A DNA stretch of 64,000 nucleotides from Paramoeba atlantica (taxonomy: Eukaryota; Protista; Discosea). Where the stretch lies: positions 1 to 64,000 of the forward strand of contig CDRNVI010000004.1 in NCBI GenBank assembly GCA_977017575.1, written 5' to 3'. The position numbers and the translations under genes were made by a program. Below the pieces are notes generated by a model that had not been told where the DNA came from, ran no database searches, and saw only the letters and a list, made by a program, of their open reading frames with translations. Below are positions 8,178 through 60,823 of the stretch, one piece after another (position 1 is the stretch's first letter; each line of letters opens with the position of its first letter).

Positions 8178-8924
8178 TCACAGAAAACTATCTTGCAAAA
8201 TTATAATCGTGTCTGTAGCGGAATTGACATGATAACCTGTCACTCGAGGATCTACAAAAATTTCATAATCATTTCCACCCACATAAGTTTTGTCGCCAAA
8301 GAAATGTATGGCGGAAACTCTCTTATCTTCTGTCAGAAAAGGCAAGCAGTACGTCTTGTCCCAACCCTTGGGAAAGATATCAATCGAAATTTGACCACCT
8401 ATGCTGAATTGTAAGTGATATTCATCACCGTATGCATTGCGTAACACCTCGATCAAACGTTTACGAACGTTATTTGTCTTGTCATACAATTCGAAAGCTT
8501 CGCGTTCGGCCTGGGTACAATTCCGACCGATGGGACTCACATTTATAAGACCTTTACGCAGCTCAAAAAATGTTCCCCTCTTCTGCGGTATATCCAAATC
8601 GGCAATGGCACGCAGTGTCTCATTTACAATTTTCTTCATCTTATCCTCTCCAAGGTGTGTTGTTAGGGACTGCTCGTGTAAGACTTGCCCACTATCAAAG
8701 GAATACAGCCCGTTTTCTGAAAATACGTAGTCAAACTGATCCAGAACGTCGGTGCCGAGCTGTTCGCGTTGCTTCGCTAGATCTGATCCTCCTACAATAG
8801 CGATAAGATATTTCTTCCGCAGCGCCTGAAGCAAGCCTTTCATTTCCAGTGTAGCTGGGGCGCGAGGAATAGTCAATGTACCATCAACATCAAACAGTAG
8901 GCATATCTCACGGGCACCGGACAT
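8178..8924 (-). CDS. PMM: Phosphomannomutase (HAD family)
   Basis: FDVDGTLT, VGGSDL, FSENGL, KRGTFFELRKGLINVSPIGRN, FSIGGQISIDIFPKGWDKTYCL, FFGDKT...GGNDYEI. ATG 8924 chosen as start. Confidence 0.96.
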   Translation of the reverse strand: MSGAREICLLFDVDGTLTIPRAPATLEMKGLLQALRKKYLIAIVGGSDLAKQREQLGTDVLDQFDYVFSENGLYSFDSGQVLHEQSLTTHLGEDKMKKIVNETLRAIADLDIPQKRGTFFELRKGLINVSPIGRNCTQAEREAFELYDKTNNVRKRLIEVLRNAYGDEYHLQFSIGGQISIDIFPKGWDKTYCLPFLTEDKRVSAIHFFGDKTYVGGNDYEIFVDPRVTGYHVNSATDTIIILQDSFL

Positions 8925-9099
8925 TGAGTAACTGTAGAGTGAGAGGTAGACAGAAAAAAGAAACTGACAATAAATCAAGTAACTGACCATCCTCAGTGTT
9001 ACCCAATGGGCCCCGACATAATTCATAAGTGAGTGCTCACATTAACAAAAGTGCACATCTTACCCACCTCATTCAATGAACAAGCCACCGTTGCCTTCA

Positions 9100-13632: not shown

Positions 13633-14337
13633 CTATTCTGCGGTTCTTAATATGAATTTCAGTTGGACATTTCCTCCCAAACTCATTAATGTTTTTTGGT
13701 TTACTTCTGTAAGATTGATTTCTCCGCTCAGTCGGTTATGTGCCAGGCTTAGAACAATCAAAGATTCTGGAATAAGCTTTAATGATAGAGTTCCGTCCAG
13801 TAAATTGTCCTCTGCTGTCAGCTCTTCCAGGTTTGGAGGCAGGCGACTTAAATCTATTGTACCATTGAATAAATTTTTCCCTAACCGACATTGCAGCAGA
13901 CTTCTAGGCAACTCACGAAGATTTATATTACCGCAAAATCTGTTGCGTTCAATGTGAAGGTGTTGGAGTTTATTGGGAAGCGTCTCAGTGAAGAACTCAC
14001 CATAGAACAGGTTGTCTTGAATATCAAAACTACGAAGGCCTCTCGGTAGTAGGTCCGTAGGTACCCTGCCCTCTAATCGGTTTCCGCGTATCGTCAATGT
14101 AGACAGGGACCAGGGCAAGTGTTGCCACAAAACTGAACCCTTCAGAGACAGTTCGTGCCAAAAGATAGAGATCACACGATGTTCTTTGTCGCAAGTGACT
14201 CCATGCCACTCTCGCACCGACCATTTCTCGTTCCATGAGGGCAGTGGGTTCGACACATCGCTCAGTAATCGTATTAGTTCGTATTCGGCAGGCAATTCGC
14301 TCCCGTGAGCACCTTTAGCAAGGCGAACCGAACTCAT
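13633..14337 (-). CDS. Leucine-rich repeat protein (plant-like LRRNT cap plus LPxxLxxLxLxxNxLxG repeats)
   Basis: WHGVTCDKEHRVISIFW cap; repeats such as LPWSLSTLTIRGNRLEG and LPPNLEELTAEDNLLDG. ATG 14337. Confidence 0.9.
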   Translation of the reverse strand: MSSVRLAKGAHGSELPAEYELIRLLSDVSNPLPSWNEKWSVREWHGVTCDKEHRVISIFWHELSLKGSVLWQHLPWSLSTLTIRGNRLEGRVPTDLLPRGLRSFDIQDNLFYGEFFTETLPNKLQHLHIERNRFCGNINLRELPRSLLQCRLGKNLFNGTIDLSRLPPNLEELTAEDNLLDGTLSLKLIPESLIVLSLAHNRLSGEINLTEVNQKTLMSLGGNVQLKFILRTAE

Positions 14338-14584
14338 GCAATATATACACAATATATAGAATTGGAAAAAACGTAGCCGACAAGCAAAATAAACAAAAGG
14401 CAACCGTCTACGACACATGTATTTGAAATCCACATCGGGAAAGAAATTTATATTGTGGAACCCCTCATCATACAATCGTACATACGGAGTTGTACTAATG
14501 TAACGTACTCAATACATTAAAGAAGCGATAAAATTATTTATTCGGCAAGCTCAGCACGAAAAACGTGCATGATTACTCGACGTC

Positions 14585-16093
14585 CTAACTGGAAGTTCTG
14601 TCATCTGATCGACTAGTTCGGAGTGAGGCTTCTAATTTTCCAAACGCCCCGCTAAGATCAGAGTAAAATATCCTGTATGCGGCAGCCGTGGCTTCGTTCC
14701 GGGGCAGTATCATTGATAACGATTCTTCAGGATTACTCTTCTTAATAAGAATACTATCATGATCTACCGAGGTCTCAATATTTCGTAGAATAGCCTCTCT
14801 TTCTGTAGCAGAAAGTGAAAAATGATTCGGCACATCGTGCAAAGCGGAGTCCTTTACAGGTTCCGTTTCTGTCAGCGAGGTACCTGTTCTGTTGTTCATT
14901 CTCGCTAAATATTCCTGATACGCTGCTTCCATATCCTCAACATTCGATGCGTAAGACTGCTGTGCGTCCATTTTTTTCGGCACCTGACTTTGCTGACTTT
15001 CCGACACTTGCTGCGTCCAGTCCCTCCGTATGCGGACGACTGGCCGTTTCTTGCGTCTCATCTTTTCTAACGCCACACTCACAAAGTCACGCCTACATAT
15101 TGGACAATTCTGATCTTTCTCGACGAAACGGTACAAGCACTCCGTGTGTAGCACATGACCACACGGAAGCTTTCGTGTGGTACAGCTCCCAGATACCCCT
15201 CCCCCGGTCATCTCCTCCATACATATCACACAACTCGGATCCTTTGCAATCTCATCCTCCTGCGGAACCTCACACTCCCGCACAACCCTACAATGCGTGC
15301 GATACACCAACACCCGTCGCAGGGTCTGCATCAGGCCACGAATCGTTAGATAAAGCTCCCGCAGTAAATGCACCGGAACCCCAACATGCTGGAACAGCAC
15401 CGCAAAAAACACAAGCTCCAGCACACACGCCACTAAGGTACACCCTAACGTAAGATAATACTTCGCGGCAATACTTGAACGGTGAAATCTTCGATCCGCG
15501 ATGTGCAACATCAGCCTTAATGAGATCCCGGTCGCGGCCACCAACATCAGGGCCCAATCCAGGGCTATCACCACCCACACACAGCACCCCTCGTTTCGAA
15601 TCACCTCCGTGGCGTACAGCAACATCCGCACCGCGGCATGGAGAAGAAAACTCAAACACAGGGATAGCCGCAACACCTCCCGCGGGTTGGTCTCCGCACT
15701 GGACTCAATCGTGTCGCCCCGGGCGTGCGCGAGCAAATGGAGCGCTTTCGCGAATGCGGTCCCGAGAAGCACCGCGGCGAGACCTGCGGTAAGGTGGAAA
15801 TCGAAATAGGACAGCGCGAAGAGGGATTGCAGGGCGTGGAGGGTGACGGTGTCCGCGACCCCCTCCCCCTCGTGGTCGCGTACGGTTCCGAGCAGAAGGC
15901 GACGGGTGAGGAGGAAACCCCAGAGGGCGGCGAGGAGGGCGTTGTTGGCGGTGAGCGCGGCAAAGGGTTTCGAACGGGTGAGGGCGAGGGCGGTGGGGAA
16001 GTAGGCCGCGGTGGGGTGGGTGGAGTAGGCAGTGTGGACGATGTAGGCCAGGGTGGCGAGGAGACTGTAGAGGGTGTACGAGGAGAGTTTCAT
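14585..16093 (-). CDS. HRD1: HRD1/synoviolin-type ERAD E3 ubiquitin ligase
   Basis: Multi-pass hydrophobic N-half with KALHLL and VPVHLLRELY motifs, then RING-H2 CVICMEE...LPCGHVLHTECL...CPICR. Confidence 0.9.
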   Translation of the reverse strand: MKLSSYTLYSLLATLAYIVHTAYSTHPTAAYFPTALALTRSKPFAALTANNALLAALWGFLLTRRLLLGTVRDHEGEGVADTVTLHALQSLFALSYFDFHLTAGLAAVLLGTAFAKALHLLAHARGDTIESSAETNPREVLRLSLCLSFLLHAAVRMLLYATEVIRNEGCCVWVVIALDWALMLVAATGISLRLMLHIADRRFHRSSIAAKYYLTLGCTLVACVLELVFFAVLFQHVGVPVHLLRELYLTIRGLMQTLRRVLVYRTHCRVVRECEVPQEDEIAKDPSCVICMEEMTGGGVSGSCTTRKLPCGHVLHTECLYRFVEKDQNCPICRRDFVSVALEKMRRKKRPVVRIRRDWTQQVSESQQSQVPKKMDAQQSYASNVEDMEAAYQEYLARMNNRTGTSLTETEPVKDSALHDVPNHFSLSATEREAILRNIETSVDHDSILIKKSNPEESLSMILPRNEATAAAYRIFYSDLSGAFGKLEASLRTSRSDDRTSS

Positions 16094-17173: not shown

Positions 17174-18303
17174 GTGACTTATTCGCTGTGGGGGGTTTAT
17201 TAATATGGGTAATGCCCACTTATATTGCACCCACTTTTCTATTTTTTGGGTCAAACTGTGCCACAGAGTTGAAGTGGACAGCATAACCTAAAAAGCTACT
17301 GGATCACACGCCCGGTCACACAACATAGGGAAACAAGTACACAATCCTGCGGAAGGGACAAACGTTGGTTCTGAGAACGCGCCCCCACTCCCTTCAGTGC
17401 GCGGGGGCGCTAAAATATAATTCTGTCTCAGGGCTACACCCACAGTTGGGCTTTGCTCACAGACGTTCAAAGTTGGGCCTTACCTCCAGACAGGTAAACT
17501 AGGAGTCTTCTCAATATTTCCCACAGCCCTAACATGGGGCAGCATGGTCCAACATGGGACCTCCTAGCGGTCTTCCCCGCCACTGCCATGTGGCACTGAC
17601 GCCAAGCTTTTTTATTGTGGCATTTTATCTGCCCGCAGGCATTTTATCTGCGCATGGGCATTTGACGTGTAATGTGGTGAACTATAAGCATACTGCAACA
17701 TTTTTTTGACGTAAAGTAGGCGGAAGGAGGAAATGAGATAAAGTGTGTGAAGTTACGCTGCGCAAGAAAACATTTCAATGCATTCATATCATTATTTTGA
17801 AAGTGGGTGCAATATAAGTGGTCTGTACCCATTAATATTATTAATAATTCAATATGCATTTATACGAGCGGCTGCGAGTGACACACGAGGAGCCCCTCGC
17901 ATGTGGAGGAGCCCCGACATGTGGTCGGCGTCATTTGCAGCAGTATGGTGGCAGTACCAGGGAAAACTGCGGGGAGATCCAGAAAGCTCATTTTACACAT
18001 CACACAAATACAGAGTTTGGCATTTCCCGGCCCTCGGTATCAGCACTTCATAAGGAGTTGTCGTTGGTACAGCCCATTTACCTGCGTCAGGCGTAGGCTC
18101 CTACCTACTTCCCGCGTAGGTTGAGGTGTATATAATGATGCTGGAAGCATCATCATCGACTCCATAAGGAGATCCCCATCAATGCTCCTTTTCGGGATGA
18201 AAATATTGTTTGATACAAAATTAAGAGCGAGAAATCTGAGTGTTAAAGCCCAATAAAAAATTTTGATAATATATTAATAATTCTTTTTTAGGCTCTGGCG
18301 CCC

Positions 18304-19210
18304 GCACATTGATAATGCATACTAAGCGGCACATTGATAATGCATATAGCACAGCGATATTGCATATAGCACATTGATAATGCATATAGCACATTGATAA
18401 TGCATATAGCACATTGATAATGCATATAGCACATTGATAATGCATATAGCACATTGATAATGCATATAGCACATTGATAATGCATACTAAGCGGCACATT
18501 GATAATGCATATTAAGCGGCACATTGATAATGCATATAGCACATTGATAATGCATATAGCCCATTGATAATGCATATAGCACATTGATAATGCATATAGC
18601 ACATTGATAATGCATATAGCACATTGATAATGCATATAGCCCATTGATAATGCATATAGCACATTGATAATGCATATAGCACATTGATATTGCATATAGC
18701 ACATTGATAATGCATACTAAGCGGCACATTGATAATGCATATTAAGCGGCACATTGATAATGCATATAGCACATTGATAATGCATATAGCCCATTGATAA
18801 TGCATATAGCACATTGATAATGCATATAGCACATTGATAATGCATATAGCACAGCGATATTGCATATAGCACATTGATAATGCATATAGCACATTGATAA
18901 TGCATATAGCACATTGATAATGCATATAGCACATTGATAATGCATATAGCACATTGATAATGCATATAGCACATTGATAATGCATACTAAGCGGCACATT
19001 GATAATGCATATTAAGCGGCACATTGATAATGCATATAGCACATTGATAATGCATATAGCCCATTGATAATGCATATAGCACATTGATAATGCATATAGC
19101 ACATTGATAATGCATATAGCACATTGATAATGCATATAGCCCATTGATAATGCATATAGCACATTGATAATGCATATAGCACATTGATATTGCATATAGC
19201 ACATTGATAA
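18304..19210. repeat. Tandem array of 20-bp unit GCACATTGATAATGCATATA (~44 units) with 500-bp higher-order periodicity
   Basis: Seen directly. Variant units recur 500 bp apart (18351/18851, 18486/18986, 18561/19061, 18641/19141, 18681/19181). Confidence 0.97.
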
Positions 19211-19437
19211 GAGTGACAAAGACATCCGATTCTTATCCATAAATGTGCGTCCTTTATATACACGGGCATGTACTTATGCGCGTTACACTAATATCACACA
19301 GCCTTTCGACTTCGCAAATTGCTTCCCACTAACGACACACATTCTTGTCTTGCAAACGGGTAAACAAGGTCTAGGCTTTGCTAGGGGTTGGGTATGGTGT
19401 CTGGGTTCATTGGCCCGGCCGGCCCCTCCGTGCGTTC

Positions 19438-19549: not shown

Positions 19550-19626
19550 TCTCGCAACTCCGGGGCCTCACCGGGAGCAGAGACGAGTGTTCACTATTTC
19601 TTGAAAACACCTTTAATTTCCAAACA

Positions 19627-19921
19627 ATGCATCATCAATGTGCTGTATGCATTATCAATGTGCTGTATGCATTATCAATGTGCTGTATGCATTATCAATG
19701 TGCTGTATGCAATATCAATGTGCTATATGCATTATCAATGTGCTATATGCATTATCAATGTGCAGTAACTATGCAATATCAATGTGCCGCTTAGTATGCA
19801 CTATCAATGTGCTATATGCATTATCAATGTGCTATATGCATTATTAATGTGCTATATGCATTATCAATGTGCGGTACGTTATGCATTATCAATGTGCAGT
19901 AACTATGCATTATCAATGTGC
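19627..19921. repeat. Inverted array of the same 20-bp unit (about 14 units)
   Basis: (tatatgcattatcaatgtgc)n, including the reverse complement of the left-array variant gcatactaagcggcac at ~19783. Confidence 0.95.
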
Positions 19922-20829
19922 GAGTGGGTCTTCGTTAAACGCGGTGGTTGTTTTCAACTTAGAAGTCACTCATGCTGCGCGCTTCGCGTTGAAAACTACC
20001 GCTGCGTTTAACGAAGAGCTTAAAAAAGAAAATTTAGCCTGGAAAACGGAAAGATCATAGCCAAAAATAGCCGAATTTTGGGTAAAAATGGGGTGATTTT
20101 CGCGTATTTTTGCTGTCAGAGCACTAAATCCGACATTTGCGCGTGGGAAATCACTCGTAGGCATGAATGAAAGCCTACCGAACGTATTAGGTAGAGAATA
20201 CGACTCCAACCATACCATTCTTTCGACATAAAAATGCCCCTCAAGGTCCGAAAAATACGGTTTCACATTTTTTAGTCAAAAATGGGTCATTTTGAGGGGC
20301 GCACCACGGTTTGAGAAAGTAATGCCTTGCGAAAACAACGGCGTAGAAAGCTAGTGTTGGTCCCAAACTATCAAAATACAATAGGGGAAACGATTTTGGA
20401 AAAATATTTTTTTTGCCATTTTTTTCGCCAAGTTGAATTTTTTTTCAAAATTTTTTTTCCGAAAAATTCCAACTTGGCGGACCCGTCCTGCTGATACGCG
20501 GGGGGGTCACCCCCGGGTAGGGGCGTGGAAAATGCGCGCCAACACCCCGGCTACCCTTTCTGCGGTTTTTTATCGAAAACTAATTTTTTCGAAAAAAATT
20601 GCTCGACCATGACACCCCCCCCTGGACCCCCCATTTTTTTCAATTTTTTTTTTCAGTTTTGGACGACCGGAGCCCCCTTTTGTATTTTTTTCTTCTATTA
20701 TATTACTGTGTTCCCCTTTATATTTTCACTGTTTTTGTTCACTTTTTTTTCAATAATCGAGTGTAGAGCGGTAGTTTTACAACCACCGCAATCTATCAAA
20801 AATAATTTTGTTCAATAATAATTGTTTCG

Positions 20830-22974: not shown

Positions 22975-23287
22975 CCGTAGACCCCCCAGTAATAGAATCC
23001 ATTTTGGACCAAAATGGCCAAATCCTTGTTACTGGGGGGTATACTTTTTGGGTGAGAAAGGACCTTTTTTGTTCATTAGTGCGTTGATTTTCAGACCATC
23101 CAACCCCGCAACCACGCGATTCCCTCCCTCGCAACCGCCCTCACCCCGCCCAAACACCCCTACCCGGCCAAACACCCCCTCCCCCCTCCAACGACCCTCC
23201 CGAGACAAATCCTTGTTACTGGGGGTCAGCCGAGAAAGGGTCAAATCCTTGTTACTGGAGGCAGTCTATTACTGGGGGGGTCTACGG
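22975..23287. mobile_element. ~313-bp MITE with 22-bp TIRs (CCGTAGACCCCCCAGTAATAGA), probable TA target
   Basis: TIRs at 22975-96 and 23265-87 (1 indel). Three internal aaatccttgttact repeats. A paralogous empty site gaacgctcaaagggacTAcctggagactctcc lies at ~23367-23400. Confidence 0.8.
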
Positions 23288-25231: not shown

Positions 25232-26407
25232 TTACTTAACCTCCTCGTACAGAAGGTGGGCTAAATAGTATCGAGTAAAAAATGCAAAAAGCGAGCAGAA
25301 AAATTGAAAAATCATTACTACAACAGTAAGAGAACGCTCATGCATGTCTCCCATGACATAAAGCAACGCGTTGAGAAGAGTGTAATTATGAGAGTTCGTT
25401 AGCGCATCTTTTTCCTTGATCCAGCGTGGTACTCGGTGCTTAGGACAGTGCATGATACCAAACAACTGTGGCAAGCTAATAAGAAAATTCAAGATTTGAG
25501 GCACAAAGAACAGTAACATTGTTTTTGGGCATTGGCCAATAAAGGAACTTACGGCAAGAAGCATTCCAGCAAAATATGTGAAGCTGTCTCCAGGAAAAAT
25601 ACGAGCCGGATATTTATTATATTTTAAAAGTGCGAGCGTCGTTGAAATAAACGGAAGCAACAAAGTGAGAGTCAAAGTGAGTTTCGAGGCCTCTTGTTCA
25701 CCTTTGATAAACTGGACAATACAGTGTATTGAAAGGGAAAATGCAATTAGAATAGACTGTCCGGCTTCTACTCCATTCACACCAGCTAAAATATTAATTG
25801 AATTTGCACAGAAGACACAAAGAGACATTAGAACCAAAAGATAGACCCATCCAAGGTTTACACTCTCATGTGAAGGCATGTGAAAAAAAAATCCGAGGAT
25901 GTTGGCAATCAGTCCTCCACGCATTGGTATGGGGAGTAAAAGTGTGGTACTTCCGGAATAACTCGTCACAAGGGGAACAGTGGATAATATCGAGAGAATA
26001 AGTTTATATCGCCAACGGACATCCAGCACATCATCCACAAAGCCAAGAAGAAGCGTCAGGGAAAGAGAGCAAAGTGCGGCGTGTAGCTCTCGAAGTGGGA
26101 TGGAAAAAAATAATGCACATAGAATTATTGTGACAATACAAAAACATCCTGTGATAAGTCCAGCGCTCTCCGGTATGAGGCGCGGAGCAAAAGACACTTG
26201 TTGCAGTAAAAATGCCGTGCTGCGCACGTCACGTAGTTTTCTCAGTCTGTTGAGCTCCTCAGTGGTAATCTTATTAATGTCGATACCATAAATACCGCGC
26301 CTCTTAAGGATCTCACAACACGGAGGAAGAAAGCGGGATGTTAGCTGGTAGCACAAAAGACTAAAAACCGCAAGTGGTAACAAAATATCGAACAGAGGTG
26401 AAGGCAT
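25232..26407 (-). CDS. DPAGT1: UDP-GlcNAc:dolichyl-phosphate GlcNAc-1-phosphate transferase
   Basis: GIYGIDINK, IPESAG, LLGFVDDVLDVRWRYKL, NSINILAGVNGVEAGQS, YPARIFPGDSFTYFAG, PQILNFLISLPQLF, CPKHRVP. Confidence 0.96.
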   Translation of the reverse strand: MPSPLFDILLPLAVFSLLCYQLTSRFLPPCCEILKRRGIYGIDINKITTEELNRLRKLRDVRSTAFLLQQVSFAPRLIPESAGLITGCFCIVTIILCALFFSIPLRELHAALCSLSLTLLLGFVDDVLDVRWRYKLILSILSTVPLVTSYSGSTTLLLPIPMRGGLIANILGFFFHMPSHESVNLGWVYLLVLMSLCVFCANSINILAGVNGVEAGQSILIAFSLSIHCIVQFIKGEQEASKLTLTLTLLLPFISTTLALLKYNKYPARIFPGDSFTYFAGMLLAVSSFIGQCPKTMLLFFVPQILNFLISLPQLFGIMHCPKHRVPRWIKEKDALTNSHNYTLLNALLYVMGDMHERSLTVVVMIFQFFCSLFAFFTRYYLAHLLYEEVK

Positions 26408-37991: not shown

Positions 37992-38630
37992 CTATGCCAC
38001 GATTTGGTGTCCAACTCGCACGTTGTCCGGTATATCCTCAGGAGCAAAGCCTCGGAAACCGTTGTGCGTTAAATCCAATGTAATTAAAGTTACAGGTAGG
38101 TGCTCTACATCTGCTATGCCTCCGAACCGATTACTTCCCAAGTGAAGAAACTGGATGTTAGATGGCAGTGATGCCAACCTCACGGGGCCAGAGAAATGGT
38201 TATGATTGAGATACAAATGGAGCAATTCCGGTGGACATGCGTTTAAATCGATGTGTCCGTGAAACTCATTGTAGCAAAGATACAAGTGCCTCATTTCTCG
38301 TGGAAACGCAGCAAGATCAATCTCCCCCGTCAGACTGTTACTCCCGACATCCAATTTTCGGACCGATTTGGGAAGTAAAGACCACTGCGGGATCCCACGG
38401 ATACGCTGAGAACGCCAATTCACTTCTAACACTGCGGAGGCCTTCGAGCCCTTCCCTACCTCGATCCCATGCCACTCAGCGATGGGAATGTGCGCACTCC
38501 ATGAGTTGTGTTGTTCAAACACCCCTTGCAGAAAACGCTCCATCTCGTATTCTACAGGAAATCCGACGTGACGGATTTTGGACGTCCGGAGAAGCGGAAG
38601 GTCGTCCTGGAAGGTACAAAGGCGTGACAT
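37992..38630 (-). CDS. Leucine-rich repeat protein (same family)
   Basis: EWHGIEV cap; LPKSVRKLDVGSNSLTGEIDL, LPSNIQFLHLGSNRFGG. Confidence 0.9.
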   Translation of the reverse strand: MSRLCTFQDDLPLLRTSKIRHVGFPVEYEMERFLQGVFEQHNSWSAHIPIAEWHGIEVGKGSKASAVLEVNWRSQRIRGIPQWSLLPKSVRKLDVGSNSLTGEIDLAAFPREMRHLYLCYNEFHGHIDLNACPPELLHLYLNHNHFSGPVRLASLPSNIQFLHLGSNRFGGIADVEHLPVTLITLDLTHNGFRGFAPEDIPDNVRVGHQIVA

Positions 38631-44101: not shown

Positions 44102-46834
44102 CTACCACCATCCATCTGCTTTACGCTGTAAGTCATAATAACTCCCATGGGATTCTGGTACTTTTTCCCTTGAAAACAGGGAAAAATAGGACTTCGACCT
44201 GGCGGAACCCTGCTCGTGAGAATTCGACGCTGTCTCTCGCTTAAACGCCTGTAAAGATCCTTCCAACACTCGATGAATGACTTGGGGAGCACGCAACACT
44301 TGTTCCCGAGTCCCCACCCCTTTCTCCAGCCCCGATAATAACCGAAACACGAAAGGCATAAAGGGGTGAGCAGAGGTATAAGCAAAGTGTACAATCTCGT
44401 CCGGAGTTAAGCCCGACGCCGCACAGCGCTGCACAGTATACACCGACAACGCGACTCGCGAAATTGTCTGCGAGGAGAATCCAAACCGACGAAGTACGGA
44501 GTAGTACTTGTACCATGGGTCTTCAATCGAGTTCAGGAAGCGCAACACATCGGGGTGCCAGGACTCGAGCTCGTAGGCGTCACTATCCTCGGAGCCCGCG
44601 CTCACATTGGGAACGGAGCCACGACCATCTTGACTTCCCGGCGTCCCTTTTCCAGGGGTCCGACCACACCCGTAGGCATTTCGAAAACTCGCAATAAGCT
44701 CATCATACCGTGGAAATGTCTCCGGTAAGATGTAGGAGTTGTGTAAGTAGTAGTGCCCCGTACGACCCTGAGGCAACGGCGTGCGGCCTCCTCGCGTACC
44801 GCTCCCTCCGGTCATGGAGCCTTCCTCCTCCACCCCATCCGGCTCGGGCCGTTCCCCGGGACTATGCCGTGTAGCCCACAGATTCTTCCCAAACATCGGC
44901 TCCCTTCGAGCGTCACCGTTCATAAAAAACAGATCAAACAACAGCCGAAATTGTCGCGCCCGGGTACGTTCCAATCCCAAATGGGGGGTGGCATCGGAAT
45001 TCGCAGGGGTAATATACTCCGAGAGCACCCCCTCCCCGAGTCCCTCCATGTGGGACACCGTCGTCACCGGGATGTGGAACACCCCGGCACTGTGCTGGTC
45101 CAGCGCGTACGCCACCGCATCCCGCAGGTAGAACTCCCCGGAGGGGAACACGCAGTGGCCGTCCCCCCCGCCGTAGAGGTTCTTTCGTCCCTGCGGGTTG
45201 ACCGCGTTGCCGCGCTCCTGGGCGAGCGGCTTGAACAGGGCAACCTGGCTGGGGTAGAAGTACTCGTGGACGCGCTGCCACACCCCCCAGGACCCGTTCT
45301 GGATCACGTAGGCCTGCCCGCTGGGCGTCTCCTTCGCTTTCAGGCGGTAGTCAAAGGGTTGGCTAAGGCGCTGGGAGACGGCCTCTACGAGGTACCCCAC
45401 CGCGGGGTCCATTTCGGGCGGGTGGGTCCCGAGGGGGCTTACCACGTGACAGCTCCGGGCCCGGGCATTGTCCAGGGAGTCACGTAGGATCTTGGCGGGG
45501 GCATCCATCCGGGTACGAAAGCTGTGCGGACTCACGGGGTACTCCGCGGCATGGGTCGCGACCGCCTCCTCGGCCAGGGCGTGGAGAAGATGCTGCATCG
45601 CGTCCCCCTCCTCGGCCTCATCTTTTCCCAGCGGAAGGTGTTGCGGGGCGGGATAAACCATCGGAGGATTCTCCCCGTACTGTCCCTCCTTCAAATATTG
45701 CGGAAACGGATTCGCGTACCCTGTGGGACACGACCCGACTCCCTTTTTCCCCATACACTGCTCCCCGTACTCCTGATCGGGCAACGGCGACGGGCAGGGG
45801 GGTTGCTCGAGGTTGAAAATCGCAGCCAGCTCGCGCCGTACCTCCAGCTCCTCCTCCGTCATGGTACGACGAGGGGTACCCGCGAGATTTCCCCCCGCGG
45901 AACCCCCCAAGGTCGCGGGGCTCGGGGCTCGCGAAAGAAACCGACTCCCGGGGTTCTCCGGGGTCGTACCCACCGGGACATCCGCAAACGGGGAATACGG
46001 GAGATTACGCGGAGAGGGCAAATGGGCGGTAGGTCGAGCCACCTTCACAGCCTCCCCTTCTTGATTCGTTGTACTACGACTTGTACTTGTCGTAGCTGCC
46101 GTAGTGTTCGCCACTGCCACAGTAGCAGCAGCATACCGTTTCAAAAAAGGATGGGACGCTGTCTCTTCCGAGCTTCCCCCGTGCCCCCCTTTTATCATGG
46201 TCTCATCCACCGACTCAGGAGACGAACCACAGGGGGTAGGGTACGGCACACGGTACAACGGAGGCCCGGGCCACGGGTAGGCGCCCCGCGCGGGGCTGTA
46301 CGCCTCGGGGGGATTCGGGGCGCCTGTGTGGGATTCGGGATAGGGATCACGGGAGTTACGGCTACGGCTACTCCCATTCCCACGGCTTTGTGGGTTAGGA
46401 TAGCCCGCAAGGGTCTCACGCGGGGGGAGCCAACGTAGGGGGGGTGGGGGCTGGGGGTCCGCGCTGCCACGGGAGGGTCCATGGGAGGGGTGGGTGAGCG
46501 GATGAGCGTAGGGGAGAGAGGACGCATTTTCGAGGCTCCCCGGGTGGGGTTGCAGGTAGGACTCGTAGGAACGGGTAAGGTTTGTGACATGGGCGGGGGG
46601 GAGGGCGAAGGTGGGGCTGCGGTGCGGGTGAGTCTCACGAGGGGGTTGGTGGTGTCGGGGTTGGACCTCGGCGGCGGTGATGGGGGGAAGAGAAATGCGT
46701 GGGGTGAGGGTGGGGAGAGGGTTACCGATTCCCGTTCTAGGGGGTGCCCGAGTAGCGGACAAGAAAAGGGTTAAGCACAGGAGCACGCGGATAGGGCTCG
46801 GAAAGGAGCACTTGGGAATTAGCAATCGCGGCAT
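44102..46834 (-). CDS. Signal-peptide protein with PI4K type II (PI4K-gamma)-like pseudokinase domain, paralogue 1
   Basis: N-term IRVLLCLTLFLSATRA; GQAYVI, VALFKPLAQERGNAVNPQG, GEFYLRDAVAYALD, IPVT, LFDLFFMNGDAR, LHNSYILPETF, GLTPDEI. Confidence 0.8.
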   Translation of the reverse strand: MPRLLIPKCSFPSPIRVLLCLTLFLSATRAPPRTGIGNPLPTLTPRISLPPITAAEVQPRHHQPPRETHPHRSPTFALPPAHVTNLTRSYESYLQPHPGSLENASSLPYAHPLTHPSHGPSRGSADPQPPPPLRWLPPRETLAGYPNPQSRGNGSSRSRNSRDPYPESHTGAPNPPEAYSPARGAYPWPGPPLYRVPYPTPCGSSPESVDETMIKGGHGGSSEETASHPFLKRYAAATVAVANTTAATTSTSRSTTNQEGEAVKVARPTAHLPSPRNLPYSPFADVPVGTTPENPGSRFLSRAPSPATLGGSAGGNLAGTPRRTMTEEELEVRRELAAIFNLEQPPCPSPLPDQEYGEQCMGKKGVGSCPTGYANPFPQYLKEGQYGENPPMVYPAPQHLPLGKDEAEEGDAMQHLLHALAEEAVATHAAEYPVSPHSFRTRMDAPAKILRDSLDNARARSCHVVSPLGTHPPEMDPAVGYLVEAVSQRLSQPFDYRLKAKETPSGQAYVIQNGSWGVWQRVHEYFYPSQVALFKPLAQERGNAVNPQGRKNLYGGGDGHCVFPSGEFYLRDAVAYALDQHSAGVFHIPVTTVSHMEGLGEGVLSEYITPANSDATPHLGLERTRARQFRLLFDLFFMNGDARREPMFGKNLWATRHSPGERPEPDGVEEEGSMTGGSGTRGGRTPLPQGRTGHYYLHNSYILPETFPRYDELIASFRNAYGCGRTPGKGTPGSQDGRGSVPNVSAGSEDSDAYELESWHPDVLRFLNSIEDPWYKYYSVLRRFGFSSQTISRVALSVYTVQRCAASGLTPDEIVHFAYTSAHPFMPFVFRLLSGLEKGVGTREQVLRAPQVIHRVLEGSLQAFKRETASNSHEQGSARSKSYFSLFSREKVPESHGSYYDLQRKADGWW

Positions 46835-47495
46835 AAAAAATTCTTTAAAAAGCTCTATAGAAACCGTCTCGTGTAGAAAAAATATACATTTTAAGCTGAA
46901 GTTATCAAAATAGATCTCTCGCTATAGTGTGTAAACGGCCGTATAGCCTACGGTACCAATAGTCTCGAAATATACATCAATCATACGAACATCAATCGCA
47001 TACACATGAATAATTATATTCAGTACATTAGCCACTGAAAAAGTGAATTATTCGAGCCTTTTTTGCTTCGCTGGGTCCCTCCAGAAATCACATCGCCTTT
47101 TGCTGCACGTTACATTCAATGCAAATAAGCCGTCCTTCCCAGGAAGTGAGAGGGAGTCATCCTGCAAGCGTAATGCTATTGGATCATTGAAAAGGCTGCA
47201 CCTTGCTTTCTTAGGGAAAGAAATTCAAGCCCCCTCCTAAATATTCCGCACAATGAACATCATAATGCACTAAAAAATAATCACGTAAACTTTTCTTCGC
47301 ATGGAGCGCCGGATCGCGAAAAAATTGATTCACGACAGGAAATACAACGTCTAAAAATCATACCCACTGAGAAAGGCACCATTTCCTACCAACGAAAAAT
47401 GAGAGTAGAAAAACTGCATTGTATCGAGTAGATGTGACAGTCCATGGTCGGGAAGTTTTACGTCATGGGCTATCACCCATGGCAAAAGAAGAGAC

Positions 47496-48917
47496 TTAGC
47501 ATCCTGTGAGCACGCCTCGGTAATCATGTTCAGATACTCCATCGTATTCGTACTTGTATTTATTAGACGGCTTGACTCGCTGGCTAAACAAAGTAAGCAT
47601 TTCGCGCACAAAGGTACGTGTGTCGGCCTCCTCGCTCCCTTCGAGTTGTGAGAATATAAAGGGAAGGAAAGCAATGGGCTCTTCAGTTAGCGCGAAGCGT
47701 ATCGTTTGCAAAGGTGTAAACTTCTTTTTCCTTACACAGAACTGTATGGCCTCAAGTGCTATCTCGAAATTTATACACACTGCTGTGGAAAATCCAAAAA
47801 CTCGCAGCATTGGAACGTACTCTTCTGCTTTCAAGCCCAAAACTATAGCACGGACCTTAGGATCAAACGTCTCCTTCATATAAGGAACTCTAAGAGCACG
47901 GAACCCCATGGTGGTAACATTCATGATATGCTTTGAATCGGGAAAACTCAATACATGCTTTGAAAAAAATAGAGCATTTCGTTTGTTTCGTTGGACTTCC
48001 TCTCTCCGGGTTTTTGAAGAAAGCTTTCCTATGCAGCCCAGGTCTTCCTCTGGATTCAACGTTAGTATCTGGAAAAGGACTCGTAGTTGGTATTCCGCCG
48101 TAAGATTCGGAGGATGATCGGGTGTAGAGCACCCGAGTGATGGTTTTTGGACTTCTTGCTGTAGTATTCCAGTACCAAAGCCTTCAATCCATACAGGGAT
48201 AGTTGGAGGGATGCTGAACAGGAAATTGCACCCTCTTGCCGCCATTAGGGCATGTAGTCGATAGGAAGCATATTCTCGCACGGCACCTAACCCCGGGGTG
48301 TACTCTTTTTCAAAAGGGAATCGACCTGCGTGAGTATGCATGCGGTAGTTCAGTGTTCCGACCTCCAAATTCGTTGGTCGGAAATTAAATAGAATATCCG
48401 GCTGACTCCATAAATCCAGAATTCTATGTGATGCACGGACGGTATAAGAATTGCCTGACATCGGTCGTCCCTCCTCCTTTTCAATGTGGTAGCCCCGCTT
48501 GTTGCCAAACACTTCTTGAGCTTTGCGCAACAAAGCTATTTCGAACTCGTTCAGAGAACTTTCTTCGACTAGAGACTGAACGGCTCGAGAAATAGAGTTA
48601 TCAAAATTCGGTGATACGAATTGAGTCGCAAGTCGGAAAGGCGACGCGAATAGTGGTTGACCCCCAAGAGGGGAGTTAGAAGAGTCTTCACGTGGGGGAA
48701 GGATGGGGGAGAGCTCTTCAATATCATGCGGCATCGGTGGAGCTAATGTTTCTCTTAGAGAGCGCACATTTTCATGAACTTTTGGCCGCGAACGGGAAGC
48801 AGATTTCTCTCTGTTCCCATGTTTCGAAATTCTCGGGACGGGGGTTCTCGTTTGAAACGTTTTCTCCTCATGGCAGCACAGCCCAAGACAGCTGAGTAGG
48901 CCAACGAAGATCAGCAT
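47496..48917 (-). CDS. Signal-peptide PI4K type II-like pseudokinase, paralogue 2
   Basis: N-term MLIFVGLLSCLGLCC; GNSYTV, FNFRPTNLE, GLGAVREYASYRL, IPPTIPV, GILQQ, FQILTLNPEE, SKHVLSFPDS, FTPLQT. Confidence 0.75.
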   Translation of the reverse strand: MLIFVGLLSCLGLCCHEEKTFQTRTPVPRISKHGNREKSASRSRPKVHENVRSLRETLAPPMPHDIEELSPILPPREDSSNSPLGGQPLFASPFRLATQFVSPNFDNSISRAVQSLVEESSLNEFEIALLRKAQEVFGNKRGYHIEKEEGRPMSGNSYTVRASHRILDLWSQPDILFNFRPTNLEVGTLNYRMHTHAGRFPFEKEYTPGLGAVREYASYRLHALMAARGCNFLFSIPPTIPVWIEGFGTGILQQEVQKPSLGCSTPDHPPNLTAEYQLRVLFQILTLNPEEDLGCIGKLSSKTRREEVQRNKRNALFFSKHVLSFPDSKHIMNVTTMGFRALRVPYMKETFDPKVRAIVLGLKAEEYVPMLRVFGFSTAVCINFEIALEAIQFCVRKKKFTPLQTIRFALTEEPIAFLPFIFSQLEGSEEADTRTFVREMLTLFSQRVKPSNKYKYEYDGVSEHDYRGVLTGC

Positions 48918-49227
48918 TCGCGTTAGAAAAAGGCTGGGAATTCACTGCAAGAAATCTTTGAAAAGGTAAAAATAATCTATAGATACCTGTGATTGACTTA
49001 TCAGTGTAGTGGTTCAGACGACTTATGCTAGTTTATAAAATTTGGTACGACAAAATTTTAGTTTAACCGTCCTACTTCTAGTTCAAAGTTATGTACAAAA
49101 TAACGAAAAAAGGATATACACAAAATGCAAGTAGATAATAAGAGCGCAAACGCAAACTTACCATGAAAATACACAGAAAAGCTCAAAGATGGTTGGTTAG
49201 GTATTTACAAAGTGAAGGCTTCTAACT

Positions 49228-52200
49228 CTACCACCGGTATTCCTCACGCATGAGTCTACGGAAATTCCACACGTAGGGCCGCAAAAATTGTTTTATATTG
49301 TAGAGCCAACGTCGCCACCATGAAATTTTAGAACCTGAAACCGTGTGCTCAAAGGCCATTTTTGTGTAGGCAGAGGGAATGACTTTTTCGTCCCCCTCGT
49401 AGTGTGTGAGAGCTCTGCCCCAGCTCACCGCAGAACGATCAATTAACTGTCCGTCGGGACCCGTTCGAAGGCGTGAGGGACAAACCTCAAGGCCCCTCGG
49501 ACTTTTGCTGTAGTCCGGTTGGGCTATCGTATCACAATGGTACGCATTGGGTACAAAGATTTCATTTAACGAATGATCAAGAATGCGTTCAAAGTGTTGC
49601 CATTGTTCCTCACTGAACGCTCCGTTTTCCCGCGGTAGACGGATGTATAAAATAGCGAAAAAATTAACAGGACGTTGTGTGTAAAGGAATCGCATGGCTT
49701 GAATCGGAGTAAGGCCTCGCAACGCGCACGCTTGGATGACACGAATCGCGATTTGAACATTGGTTTGTATTGTAGGCGAGAACTTCAGATTCTCCAGCAG
49801 TTCCTGAAACTGGTCCATTTTTAACGCACGGAGAAAGGCATCTACGGGGGGTAGGAATGGAATGTCAAGGTATGGCGTCCTGGTTAAGCGTAGTGACAGA
49901 TCGGTAATACTCAGCATTTTTTCGGTGTCTGGGAGAATGTACGCGTTGTTCGTACTGTACAGACCGGGACGAAAAAATGTTTGCGCGGCATGGGTTTGTT
50001 CCTGCGCGATAACCCCCGCGGTTAGGAGCTCTCGTATGTGACCGTAAATTGTGCCTTGCGTATAGGAGTTCATGGTTAGCAGGTTGAATATGTGGTTCAT
50101 TTGACAATCAACCATGTAGTCAAGTGACATGGGGTGGTGAAAATCGGGAACGGTAACTGGTAGAACTCTTTCCTGTAAGTAGCCGCCACCTAAACCACCA
50201 ATGCGCAAGGGGAGACCGGTAGGAATACGGAAACCCACGCGTACTGCGGTCATCGCATTCACTATTGGGTTCAAACGATGGGCCGCTATCTCACGATGAA
50301 CACCTTGACCCTTCGGAAAGGCACGGTGAAATGCAAACTTGTACCCGGAATGATATTTTCTGAACATCGTTGTGCCCATTTCTAGATTTACGGGCTTGAA
50401 TGTTGCAATCGGGGTACCATAATAACCTTCTAAAGGAGGTAGCTCGTGGATGATGTATGCAATACCGGGTAGGTAGTTTTTGCAAACACTCAGGAAGTAG
50501 CGCTGCGGTGTGAGTATGTGTCGTACATGCTGTCCAAGAATTGCCTGCCGAGCGCTTAACGTGTCGTCGGCAAGCCCATCCACAAGCAGAAGCTCACGCA
50601 CGAAGTCTTGTCGCGGTTGGATGGTTACTTTTTCTTCTGGGAGTCGCACCGGAATCTCGCCCTCTACGGTCGTTCGGACAATGGAAAGAGCGTACTGCAA
50701 CGCCTCTCGGGGATCTAAGTCTGGAGTTTCCTCAGATTCCTTTTCTTCAAAGACTGGCGTAAGCGACGGTGAGCTATCCGTGTCTGACAATTTCGACGAG
50801 GACGCTAGTTCTCGACTCCTCGGTTGATGAGGTGATGACACACCCATGTCTAGGTCCTCCAAAGCTTCTTCCTCATTCTCACTCTCCTCTTCAATCCTAT
50901 TTTCTGTCCTCCGCGGGCGCGTTGAGGGTCGAGTCAGCCTCATTAAATCACTCGAGGAGCTGCTTCTCGAAAGCGACGAGTGCAGACGATTTATTTTCTC
51001 CGGAGCCATCGAGCGTGGTCGTCGAAGCTCGCTACCCCAGCGCTCTCGCATTCTCTCCGCGACGTTGGGTAAACTGGACATGGGGCTTAAATCTCCCGCC
51101 TCTTTCTTTTGCACATACTGGTGCACATCCGAGAGGGAGGAGTATTTGCTTCGTCGGGACAAGGGGGCTGTGAATCGCTTATCTTTAGTAAGACCTCCCA
51201 TCGTAAGCAATGCTACCGGTCCCAATGACTCCCTTCTCTTTGGTGTTTGGGAAGGAGAAGGCATCGGAGGGGTCATGGGAGGGAGACTTCGTGAGGCACT
51301 ACTCTCCGGTGTGCGTTGCAGACGCGGACTCTGTCGTGGACTGGCTCGTGGGGTTGACCGCGTTTTTAACTCACGCTCCTCGTTCTCTAGTTTGTTTTGT
51401 AATTCTTGCTTCCACCATCCACGGTGTTGTTGGGGTTCGGAGGAAGACAGAGTGGCTCCCAAAGCGACGCTTTGAGATCGCTGGATCGGAGGAACAGGTT
51501 TTTGGGCGTGCGGTGGTTCAATCGAGCGCCTCCTTCGCGGGGTTTCTTTTCCCGTGATCTTTGTAGGGTCGACAGGAGGTTTCGCAGCTTTCTGCGCAGG
51601 CAATGTACCTTCTTTTCGTCCAATTCGTGGAGGGGTTGCTTGAGGTTTGAAATACCTGTTTATGCTAAATATGCCATGTTTCTCTCGAGGAGACTTCTTT
51701 CGGGTAGAGCCCTGGGATGGGTGTGTTGGGCTGCTCAGTTCAGATGTACTTTGCGAAAACACAGAGGTTAACGGCTTCGATCGAAGTGGTACTTGTTCTG
51801 TAATCGGTGCTGAGGTAGGTCGAGGAGGAGGAATGCGACGTCCTTGAAAAGTCTCCTCTACAGAGGTCTGTGAAGGTAAGGAAGCATTGTCAGAGGAGCC
51901 CTCCACGTTCAAAGGCTTGGATGATCGCCTCGACCCGAATTTTCCGATGGCGGAGAGAACTTTTTCCTGAGATTTACGTCGGGGAGCAAGTGTTTCGCGG
52001 AGTTCAAAGCTTCGTACACGTTGCGGTTCCTTAAAAACAGGCTGTGCTTGTGTCTTTTCCGTAGTCGGAGTTACTGGTGTCTGCCGCCCAACAGACGACC
52101 GGTTAGTATCATCAAGATTTTGTTGTTCTTGTGCCCTAGAAACTGACATGCGCCTTAGACGAGCGTCTCGTGAAGGATTGCTCTCGGCAGATTCCCGGAG

Positions 52201-52875
52201 TATTCGCTCTGCGCCGTACGGCACTTTGCGTTGAAAGGAGGTTTGCAACGAGGGAAGTGTCGAGTACTGGAAACGACCCAGCATCGTTGTGCTGGACGGA
52301 GGACCCATATACTGCCTTGGAATTCCTATTTGATGCACAGGTAGTTCCCCTTCAAAGCGAGGCGGGCTTTCCTCCGGAGAAGATGCACCTGGTCGTTCAG
52401 GCATTGGATACGGCTGTGATGCATTCCTACGACCGGATTTGGGGGCCGGAATATATGGTCGACCGGATCGAGCAATCTTGCGTCGATCTTGAACAGGGTG
52501 TGGAACAGGGCTATCAATCGACAAGCGACGCCTTTGTTGCGGATCTTTCGGAAGCATCGTCACAGGCGCAGGGATTAACTCCTCAGAAGGCGAATGTAAA
52601 TGTGCTTCAACAGACGAATCAGCGACACCATGCGGGGTCGTGGCGGGTTCCGTAACCTGCGAATGCTCCTTGGTATCTGGATGTTGAACATCCGACTGAG
52701 GACTCTTCGAACTACCTTCCTTTTCAATAAAGGGGAGAGAAGCATTTCCGAGTCTTGCGGCGTCTTGTTGTTTGGGAAGTCCGGCGCTCTCCTTCGATGT
52801 GTTTTTAGTAGTGTCATGTAAATCGCTTCCAAGGAGATTCGACAGCAACAGCAATATTATCAGACTTCTCCTCAT
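49228..52875 (-). CDS. Signal-peptide PI4K type II-like pseudokinase, paralogue 3 (long disordered linker)
   Basis: ATG 52875: MRRSLIILLLLSNLLGS; GIAYII, IATFKPVNLE, GQGVHREIAAHRL, GYLQE, FNLLTMNSYT, TNNAYILPDT, GLTPIQA. Confidence 0.78.
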   Translation of the reverse strand: MRRSLIILLLLSNLLGSDLHDTTKNTSKESAGLPKQQDAARLGNASLPFIEKEGSSKSPQSDVQHPDTKEHSQVTEPATTPHGVADSSVEAHLHSPSEELIPAPVTMLPKDPQQRRRLSIDSPVPHPVQDRRKIARSGRPYIPAPKSGRRNASQPYPMPERPGASSPEESPPRFEGELPVHQIGIPRQYMGPPSSTTMLGRFQYSTLPSLQTSFQRKVPYGAERILRESAESNPSRDARLRRMSVSRAQEQQNLDDTNRSSVGRQTPVTPTTEKTQAQPVFKEPQRVRSFELRETLAPRRKSQEKVLSAIGKFGSRRSSKPLNVEGSSDNASLPSQTSVEETFQGRRIPPPRPTSAPITEQVPLRSKPLTSVFSQSTSELSSPTHPSQGSTRKKSPREKHGIFSINRYFKPQATPPRIGRKEGTLPAQKAAKPPVDPTKITGKETPRRRRSIEPPHAQKPVPPIQRSQSVALGATLSSSEPQQHRGWWKQELQNKLENEERELKTRSTPRASPRQSPRLQRTPESSASRSLPPMTPPMPSPSQTPKRRESLGPVALLTMGGLTKDKRFTAPLSRRSKYSSLSDVHQYVQKKEAGDLSPMSSLPNVAERMRERWGSELRRPRSMAPEKINRLHSSLSRSSSSSDLMRLTRPSTRPRRTENRIEEESENEEEALEDLDMGVSSPHQPRSRELASSSKLSDTDSSPSLTPVFEEKESEETPDLDPREALQYALSIVRTTVEGEIPVRLPEEKVTIQPRQDFVRELLLVDGLADDTLSARQAILGQHVRHILTPQRYFLSVCKNYLPGIAYIIHELPPLEGYYGTPIATFKPVNLEMGTTMFRKYHSGYKFAFHRAFPKGQGVHREIAAHRLNPIVNAMTAVRVGFRIPTGLPLRIGGLGGGYLQERVLPVTVPDFHHPMSLDYMVDCQMNHIFNLLTMNSYTQGTIYGHIRELLTAGVIAQEQTHAAQTFFRPGLYSTNNAYILPDTEKMLSITDLSLRLTRTPYLDIPFLPPVDAFLRALKMDQFQELLENLKFSPTIQTNVQIAIRVIQACALRGLTPIQAMRFLYTQRPVNFFAILYIRLPRENGAFSEEQWQHFERILDHSLNEIFVPNAYHCDTIAQPDYSKSPRGLEVCPSRLRTGPDGQLIDRSAVSWGRALTHYEGDEKVIPSAYTKMAFEHTVSGSKISWWRRWLYNIKQFLRPYVWNFRRLMREEYRW

Positions 52876-55077: not shown

Positions 55078-55240
55078 GGTCATTTTGGGGAGGCGTGCCA
55101 CGGCTTCAAGAAGAGGTATTTTGTGAAAACAACGGCGTAGAAAGCAGGTAGAGGTCTCAAACTCTCAAAACACAATATGTGAAACGTTTTTGAAAAACTC
55201 TTTTTTATGCCATGTTTTTTGCGAAGTTGATTTGTTTTTG
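55078..55240. mobile_element. Internal fragment of the P-unit family
   Basis: ggtcattttg.gg.ggcg..ccacgg...gaaaacaacggcgtagaaagc...ggtc.caaact.tcaaaa.acaat, as at 20285-20375. Confidence 0.8.
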
Positions 55241-55269
55241 AATTTTCAAAAACTTCTCTCGAATGGCTA

Positions 55270-60184: not shown

Positions 60185-60823
60185 TTAGAGGGGGTCTTCC
60201 ATATAGACACATTCAGGTGCGGTTTCTTGTAGCAGCTGTAACTGATTTCCATAGAGCTCTACCATTTTTAATTTCGGGGGAAGGCGCGATACATCCACAA
60301 CTCCAGAGAAATTGTTATGACACATACTTATCAATTCGATGCCTCGGGGTAACTCTGTCAGATCGACAGGCCCAGACAAGAGATTTCTTCCTACGGCAAA
60401 GAACCCTAATTTTGGTGGAAGGTGCGAAAAGTCAATGCTACCCACAAAACGAGACGTGGCAGCTATAAACTTTTCCAACGAGTTCGGCAAACTCGCGGTG
60501 TCGATCTGGCCCGTGAGTTGCGTAGGGTATGGGAAATTAAAACTCAGCTCCAGTACTGTCACAGTAGATGGCAAATCACTCCACGAAAGGCTTCCAGAAA
60601 GCCGAAGATTGCCCCAGTGCAGCTCTTTAACATTCCCTTCCATGTCGCAGTGTACGTGCCTCCAGTTGCACGCAGGCGTTGCTGTTGTCCAAGTATCTTT
60701 AAAATACGAACTCTCGTAAATGACCGACCTTCCTCCAGAAATGTTTCCCACAAAGCGTGACATTTTCACTTCCTGGGGGAGCACACTTCCTCTAACCTTA
60801 CCAGCGCGAACTTGTCCGTCCAT
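60185..60823 (-). CDS. Leucine-rich repeat protein (same family)
   Basis: CNWRHVHCD cap, LHWGNLRLSGSL, LPPKLGFFAVGRNLLSGPVDL. Confidence 0.9.
   Translation of the reverse strand: MDGQVRAGKVRGSVLPQEVKMSRFVGNISGGRSVIYESSYFKDTWTTATPACNWRHVHCDMEGNVKELHWGNLRLSGSLSWSDLPSTVTVLELSFNFPYPTQLTGQIDTASLPNSLEKFIAATSRFVGSIDFSHLPPKLGFFAVGRNLLSGPVDLTELPRGIELISMCHNNFSGVVDVSRLPPKLKMVELYGNQLQLLQETAPECVYMEDPL

Follow-up and report, generated by a model that had tools for sequence, protein, structure and literature searches.

What part could be played by three neighbouring genes that each set an eroded lipid-kinase-like domain behind a hydrophobic N-terminus and a disordered linker? The question is raised by a 64,000-nucleotide stretch of DNA from the Paramoeba atlantica assembly GCA_977017575.1 (contig CDRNVI010000004.1, positions 1 to 64,000; hereafter the window), in which the genes, here called P1, P2 and P3, occupy positions 44102 to 52875. 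An earlier reading of the sequence (the original prediction) had described them as secreted relatives of type II phosphatidylinositol 4-kinases (PI4Ks) with damaged catalytic sites, possibly acting on the host of a Perkinsela-like endosymbiotic kinetoplastid. Our profile, structure and tree comparisons indicate that the trio are pseudokinases that keep the predicted type II PI4K fold and belong to a small, old family so far found only in the Perkinsela lineage. They are candidates, as yet unproven, for a role in contact between symbiont and host.

The Trio and Its Shared Domain

The adjacent genes originally described, of 910, 473 and about 1215 amino acids (aa), were recovered as three consecutive intronless minus-strand open reading frames (ORFs), and the claimed common architecture of hydrophobic N-terminus, linker and C-terminal domain is visible in P1, P2 and P3 alike. 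The length of P3 is counted from ATG, as the mechanical ORF begins at a GTG two codons ahead of it. The genes and their predicted domains are as follows, in window coordinates.

44102..46834, minus strand: P1, 910 aa, with a hydrophobic (h-) region at about aa 17-28, a Pro/Ser/Gly/Arg-rich linker at about aa 30-465 and a PI4K-II-like pseudokinase domain at about aa 465-880; orthologues P0007 (Perkinsela KNH05665.1) and P0009
44195..45442, minus strand: predicted pseudokinase domain of P1; F-K-P lysine kept, NGDA, Mg-site LHNS
47496..48917, minus strand: P2, 473 aa, with an uncharged N-terminus of 15 residues and a short linker at about aa 16-105, then the pseudokinase domain; orthologues P0005/P0024 (Perkinsela KNH05176.1), P0008 and P0011
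47499..48602, minus strand: predicted pseudokinase domain of P2; FRP, catalytic loop NPEE, Mg-site SKHV
49228..52875, minus strand: P3, 1215 aa from ATG, with an Arg-Arg then Leu-rich N-terminus, a Ser/Pro/Arg-rich linker, the pseudokinase domain and an aromatic-rich C-terminal tail; orthologue P0004
49492..50610, minus strand: predicted pseudokinase domain of P3; F-K-P lysine kept, NSYT, Mg-site TNNA; AlphaFold model
49231..49491, minus strand: C-terminal extension of P3, rich in Trp, Tyr, Phe and Arg, last residues Y-R-W

Pairwise comparison shows the three to be paralogous (P3/P2, E 3e-32 over 263 residues; P3/P1, E 3e-10; P1/P2, E 4e-7). Their similarity is restricted to the C-terminal domain of about 370 residues, which is longer in P1 owing to two low-complexity inserts.

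Pfam does not see this domain. Full-length P1, P2 and P3 gave no match at E values up to 1, and the nine family domains, scanned one by one, gave none at E values up to 10; the gathering score of PF00454 (PI3_PI4_kinase) was not reached. Sequence searches of the PDB with P2, with a three-sequence profile and with a nine-sequence profile found nothing, and searching a word index of proteins with P2 or a family profile brought up only P0011 and the same-species contig. When a profile built from the three domains was searched against 1.84 billion representative proteins, 23 matches resulted; among them are four that represent the same genes on a public contig, and six close relatives without a Pfam domain. 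Each of the 11 genuine remote matches carries PF00454 (E 4e-8 to 7e-4), two of them together with a ubiquitin-like domain. The twelfth remote row of that search, P0010, proved to be a repeat artefact.

Compared by hhalign, the nine-member family alignment matches the canonical PF00454 proteins with a probability of 99.65% (E 4.9e-25, 260 columns), and in the PDB the canonical set matches PI4K2A and PI4K2B alone (E 1e-24 to 1e-20). Structure searches led to the same enzymes. For an AlphaFold model of the P3 domain (pLDDT 81, pTM 0.84), the top 12 Foldseek matches are PI4K2A/2B (best E 2.6e-6, TM-scores 0.4-0.5), followed by VPS34 and class I PI3Ks. The input alignment of that model contained canonical kinases, and full-length P2 was therefore modelled from family members only; for the resulting poor model (pLDDT 55), the first nine Foldseek matches are again PI4K2A/2B. 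FAM20, HipA and protein-kinase folds were ruled out as closest relatives by the structure searches, with FAM20 at rank 31 (E 1.3) for the P2 model and outside the top 50 for the P3 model. Profile search, hhalign and Foldseek thus agree with the homology originally proposed, and by these measures the C-terminal domain of P1, P2 and P3 is a type II PI4K homologue whose fold is predicted to be kept.

Catalytic Residues

All motif substitutions listed in the original prediction are present in an alignment with canonical type II-like kinases, which also bears out its claim that the catalytic residues are eroded differently in each paralogue. The F-K-P position is Lys in P1, P3, P0004 and P0005, Arg in P2, P0008 and P0011, and Cys or Ala in P0007 and P0009. 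The N-x-D-R loop reads NGDA in P1 (Asp kept, Arg lost), NPEE in P2 and NSYT in P3. Across the family the catalytic-loop Asp (of N-x-D-R-x-x-x-N) is retained in P1 alone; it is Asn in the P1 orthologues, Glu in P2, Tyr in P3 and P0004, and Phe in P0005, P0008 and P0011. At the I-D-H-G Mg-site, which has become LHNS, SKHV and TNNA in P1, P2 and P3, the Mg-binding Asp is gone in nine of nine members (His in P1, Lys in P2 and Asn in P3; His, Asn or Pro in the Perkinsela proteins). With no member retaining the Mg-binding Asp, only P1 retaining the catalytic-loop Asp and several lacking the ATP lysine, the trio are pseudokinases by sequence, which argues against ordinary phosphotransfer.

Some proteins first called pseudokinases, among them SelO and SidJ, have turned out to be enzymes whose active site is rearranged. 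Plant PI4K-gamma phosphorylates proteins, not lipids. The trio might likewise have a rearranged active site that catalyses phosphotransfer or some other nucleotide-dependent reaction. Consistent with this, the catalytic loop retains its first Asn (the N of L/M-N) almost without exception, most members have Asn or His at or beside the lost Mg-site Asp, and Lys or Arg occupies the F-K-P position in seven of nine. However, no consistent polar residue replaces the lost Asp residues across the three orthogroups described below, the F-K-P position has become Cys or Ala in two members, and the columns that never vary are structural ones (Phe and Pro of F-x-P, glycines, prolines and aromatic residues of the C-lobe). 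We therefore regard retained catalysis as quite improbable.

Distribution and Age of the Family

The six close relatives are KNH05176.1 and KNH05665.1 of Perkinsela sp. CCAP 1560/4, together with proteins encoded on contigs of chromosome size in three ENA assemblies, one of which is identical to CCAP 1560/4 over the fetched locus. NCBI names KNH05176.1 "hypothetical" and KNH05665.1, without basis, "replicase"; the latter (fetched locus L002, 10001-11536) is without a Pfam domain and is the P1-type member of the PI4K-II-like pseudokinase family. The profile search of the 1.84-billion-protein library found no family member in other kinetoplastids, free-living prokinetoplastids included, and two scans of JGI metagenomes found no relative.

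The best-scoring canonical matches (E 4e-8) come from two free-living organisms, Apiculatamorpha spiralis (P0013/P0029) and Papus ankaliazontas (P0019), prokinetoplastids of the same kinetoplastid subclass as Perkinsela (PMC7859406). Their proteins have every catalytic motif intact and no hydrophobic N-terminus. The comparison of free-living with symbiotic kinetoplastids, put forward with the original prediction as a check on a host-directed role, thus yielded no free-living orthologues, only intact and signal-less relatives in Papus and Apiculatamorpha.

In a maximum-likelihood tree, the family sits on one long stem (support 100/100, 1.88 changes per site), whose attachment point among the canonical clades has no resolved position. 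Within the family there are three orthogroups, each containing one window gene: P1 with P0007 and P0009 (support 99/97), P3 with P0004 (99/95), and P2 with P0005, P0008 and P0011 (93/87). From this pattern, the triplication is judged older than the split of the window organism from Perkinsela and not a recent expansion. The split itself is deep, the HRD1 proteins of the two being 36% identical. At most one gene per orthogroup was recovered from each Perkinsela-type assembly.

Together these results describe a small, old family, so far known from the Perkinsela lineage of prokinetoplastids only and apparently derived from a type II PI 4-kinase-like gene. Possession of the family points to the window organism being a Perkinsela-related prokinetoplastid. 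The Perkinsela-like kinetoplastid originally supposed fits this, as the close relatives are solely Perkinsela CCAP 1560/4 proteins and Perkinsela-type contigs and the window genes form a one-strand intronless array. Two other suggestions fared less well. The analogy with expanded effector families such as ROP5 and FIKK fails, given only three orthogroups, at most one gene of each per assembly and a triplication that appears to predate the Perkinsela split. Nor is the tandem arrangement a conserved trait: in Perkinsela the three gene types lie at three unrelated loci. Genes of 414-436 aa found upstream of the P1-like gene in Perkinsela do not belong to the family and show no homology to one another.

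Tempo of Divergence

Between Perkinsela genomes, family members are 37-48% identical. Neighbouring genes give 48% for Pelota, 47% for topoisomerase II, 41-44% for a SNARE and 42-45% for a MIF4G protein, with NOP2 and PA28 at 68-69%. Divergence of the family thus looks ordinary, with no arms-race signature. Between-species dN/dS is unsuited here, because protein identities of 30-48% imply saturated synonymous sites.

At closer range, a public contig (ENA ERZ24900291) is 99.8% identical to the window. Across the trio there are 13 nonsynonymous and 4 synonymous differences (ratio of nonsynonymous to synonymous differences per site, pN/pS, ~1.05), against 4 replacement and 3 silent differences in seven neighbours (pN/pS 0.40; aminopeptidase P included only in its contig-covered part); the contrast has a Fisher p of 0.09 on small counts. 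In that contig P3 (L001 7258-9687) falls into three reading frames: short C runs near window positions 51507, 50410 and 50131 each differ in length by one base. No other gene is affected. Of the remaining three indels in the 19-kb overlap, none falls in a listed gene and two are in poly-A runs. The frame breaks may be errors of a long-read metagenome assembly or real decay.

Taken as decay, these observations would suggest that the trio are relics of a dispensable kinase, drifting to loss in a reduced genome; the replacement-rich differences and the broken P3 are what such a history would leave. Yet all three window ORFs are intact, over up to 1215 codons, and three or more further Perkinsela-type assemblies, one matching the NCBI CCAP 1560/4 record exactly at the locus, likewise hold intact orthologues. 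The domain can still be aligned across the deep split recorded by HRD1, the length differences in short C runs may be assembly errors, and the replacement excess is not significant. We consider decaying remnants highly improbable.

N-Termini, Linkers and Tails

By maximum hydrophobicity over 10 residues, the N-termini of the trio are the top three among 31 ATG-started coding-strand ORFs. The hydrophobic N-termini measure 8-15 residues, and their uncharged runs of 9-15 residues would suit cleavable signal peptides and seem too short for a membrane span. Hydrophobic N-termini also occur in P0004, P0007 and P0009, and are lacking in the canonical relatives from Papus, Apiculatamorpha and environmental sequences.

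The linkers measure ~435 residues in P1, ~90 in P2 and ~735-750 in P3. They contain 15-25% order-promoting residues, and no tandem repeats were found in any of the three. One pentapeptide, RETLA, is the sole 5-mer common to all of them; a shared 5-mer arose in 1 of 2000 shuffles. Neither the window nor the fetched loci have RETLA in any other ORF. This shared motif is a new observation beyond the original prediction. Its copies are:

46406..46420, minus strand: RETLA in the P1 linker, aa 139-143
48741..48755, minus strand: RETLA in the P2 linker, aa 55-59
51985..51999, minus strand: RETLA in the P3 linker, aa 293-297

The aromatic, Arg-rich C-terminal tail of P3 has a counterpart in P0004, which ends in Y-R-F. 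No Cys position is conserved across the nine aligned domains. Two features of the P2 orthologues (group 2) may be recorded separately. P0024, P0008 and P0011 have a motif P-F-(Q/S)-C-(I/V)-(R/Q)-P ahead of the domain (fetched loci L006, L007 and L008, from 10001), and P0005, read from an internal Met, begins M-G-x-x-x-G-x-C-C, which resembles an acylation site.

A Proposed Role and Its Main Competitor

We tentatively favor the view that the trio are secreted or surface-displayed, non-catalytic binding modules, giving it somewhat less than an even chance. According to the Perkinsela genome paper, the organism is enclosed by a single membrane within the host cytoplasm and has a set of genes for exocytosis; the authors propose that it secretes into the host (PMC5601477). 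If the hydrophobic N-termini are signal peptides, they would take the proteins into the endoplasmic reticulum (ER) and onward to the cell surface or beyond. Because Perkinsela lies in the host cytoplasm behind that one membrane, an exocytosed protein would meet the cytosolic face of host membranes, the normal workplace of the PI4K-II fold. There, the dead kinase domain could bind a phosphoinositide, a nucleotide or a partner of the host PI4K-II, the long disordered linkers could act as spacers or stalks, and RETLA could serve in processing, sorting or docking. The absence of a family-wide conserved Cys fits a reducing destination. The genes for N-glycosylation and ER-associated degradation in the window count in favor of a secretory route. 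A more specific version, that the proteins are exported into the amoeba cytoplasm and the dead fold occupies host type II PI4K sites or partners, either steering phosphatidylinositol 4-phosphate-dependent traffic or autophagy away from the symbiont or anchoring the symbiont by the host nucleus, is unlikely on present evidence.

Several observations weigh against a secreted or surface-displayed module, and the pattern of orthogroups and rates fits a housekeeping scaffold within the symbiont's own endomembranes equally well. Such a protein, either in the lumen or anchored through an uncleaved N-terminus, would be a non-catalytic partner or regulator of traffic or of a remaining active kinase, and would never touch the host; FAM20A, the non-catalytic partner of FAM20C, provides a model. 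The three orthogroups have been kept, with at most one gene of each per assembly and no expansion, across deeply diverged Perkinsela genomes, and they diverge at the pace of housekeeping neighbours. N-terminal hydrophobicity is weak in the group-2 orthologues of Perkinsela, one of which, P0005, has the possible acylation site at its internal Met. In addition, the hydrophobic codons could lie upstream of trans-splice sites, and a search of the Perkinsela orthologues for RETLA gave only a loose ELRQLA, in P0004. On the other hand, a general role would not predict absence from the free-living prokinetoplastid and other kinetoplastid proteomes of the library searched, and long disordered linkers and a lineage-specific motif are seen more typically in exported or surface proteins. 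We judge the internal scaffold somewhat unlikely, and keep the secreted or surface-displayed module as our working reading.

Genomic Setting

All gene-like ORFs of at least 200 aa in the window lie on the minus strand and are without introns, as in a kinetoplastid polycistron. The window holds genes for N-glycosylation and ER-associated degradation; the secretory-pathway genes previously noted were located at 8178-9026 (PMM), 14585-16093 (HRD1) and 25232-26407 (DPAGT1). Rfam and tRNA scans across the window gave no matches. Matches to the neighbouring aminopeptidase P from fungi, animals and trypanosomes are all ~40% identical and are uninformative for placement.

GC content at third codon positions (GC3) varies from 0.35 to 0.75 between minus-strand genes of one transcription direction; examples are a mitoribosomal S8-like gene (0.75), P1 (0.68), an MKT1-like gene (0.64), P2 (0.44) and DPAGT1 (0.40). 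With such a span among window genes, the high GC of P1 was ruled out as a trio-specific trait.

The region from 16 to 24 kb has few genes and low GC. It includes arrays of a 20-nt unit at 18289-19358 and 19605-19896, in opposite orientation, with arms of up to 137 nt at 95% complementarity, and more dispersed repeats at 19.9-21.8 kb. A 242-aa ORF at 18512-19240 (GC 0.33) sits within a 20-nt array and was rejected as an artefact. Two dispersed non-coding elements were also seen, one C-rich (1086-1171 and 23121-23225, 79-87% identity) and one of 159 nt (20290-20448 and 55084-55242, 77% identity). A small related protein family (~210-280 aa) has window copies at 13633-14475, 37992-38630 and 60185-60823, two of which have Pfam leucine-rich-repeat matches and the third none; two further copies lie in one 21-kb Perkinsela locus (L002/L003 652-1413 and 16298-16945).

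Significance and Comparison With Known Systems

Among the hosts of Perkinsela is the organism that causes amoebic gill disease in farmed salmon, and we know of no protein that acts at the Perkinsela symbiont-host interface. A family that is invisible to Pfam, lineage-restricted and conserved offers three concrete candidates for that interface. Full-text literature searches returned no report of pseudokinases derived from a type II PI4K and none linking Perkinsela with PI 4-kinases. Should the trio indeed be exported and occupy host type II PI4K sites or partners, they would represent the first molecular effectors of a non-photosynthetic eukaryote-in-eukaryote endosymbiosis, and the first described pseudokinase effectors with a lipid-kinase fold.

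The nearest known proteins are the type II PI4Ks (human PI4K2A and PI4K2B, plant PI4K-gamma; PF00454), with which the trio share fold and motif order: a G-x-x-Y loop, F-K-P, an R-E-x-A-A-Y helix, V-P-x-T, G-S-L-Q, L-N-x-D-R and I-D-H-G-Y-x-L-P, then C-lobe helices with G-x-T. Unlike those enzymes, the trio fall below Pfam detection at E 10 and have lost the Mg-binding Asp, and they carry hydrophobic N-termini and long disordered linkers in place of the cytosolic enzymes' own N-terminal regions. Judged from these alignments, they are strongly diverged proteins of the type II PI4K branch that fail both its defining catalytic features and the Pfam threshold. The canonical kinases of Apiculatamorpha and Papus, in contrast, are catalytically intact and without a hydrophobic N-terminus, and the family stands apart from them on its long stem.

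Two further systems resemble the trio in design. FAM20C/FAM20A and Four-jointed have a signal sequence ahead of an atypical kinase fold, as is proposed for the trio, and include a pseudokinase that acts as partner; they have no specific structural relation to the trio. Toxoplasma ROP5/ROPK and Plasmodium FIKK proteins share with the trio a signal-type N-terminus and an eroded kinase-like domain in an intracellular eukaryote; theirs, however, are protein-kinase folds in large, fast-evolving, expanded families, whereas the trio combine a predicted PI4K-II fold with ordinary divergence and putative export.

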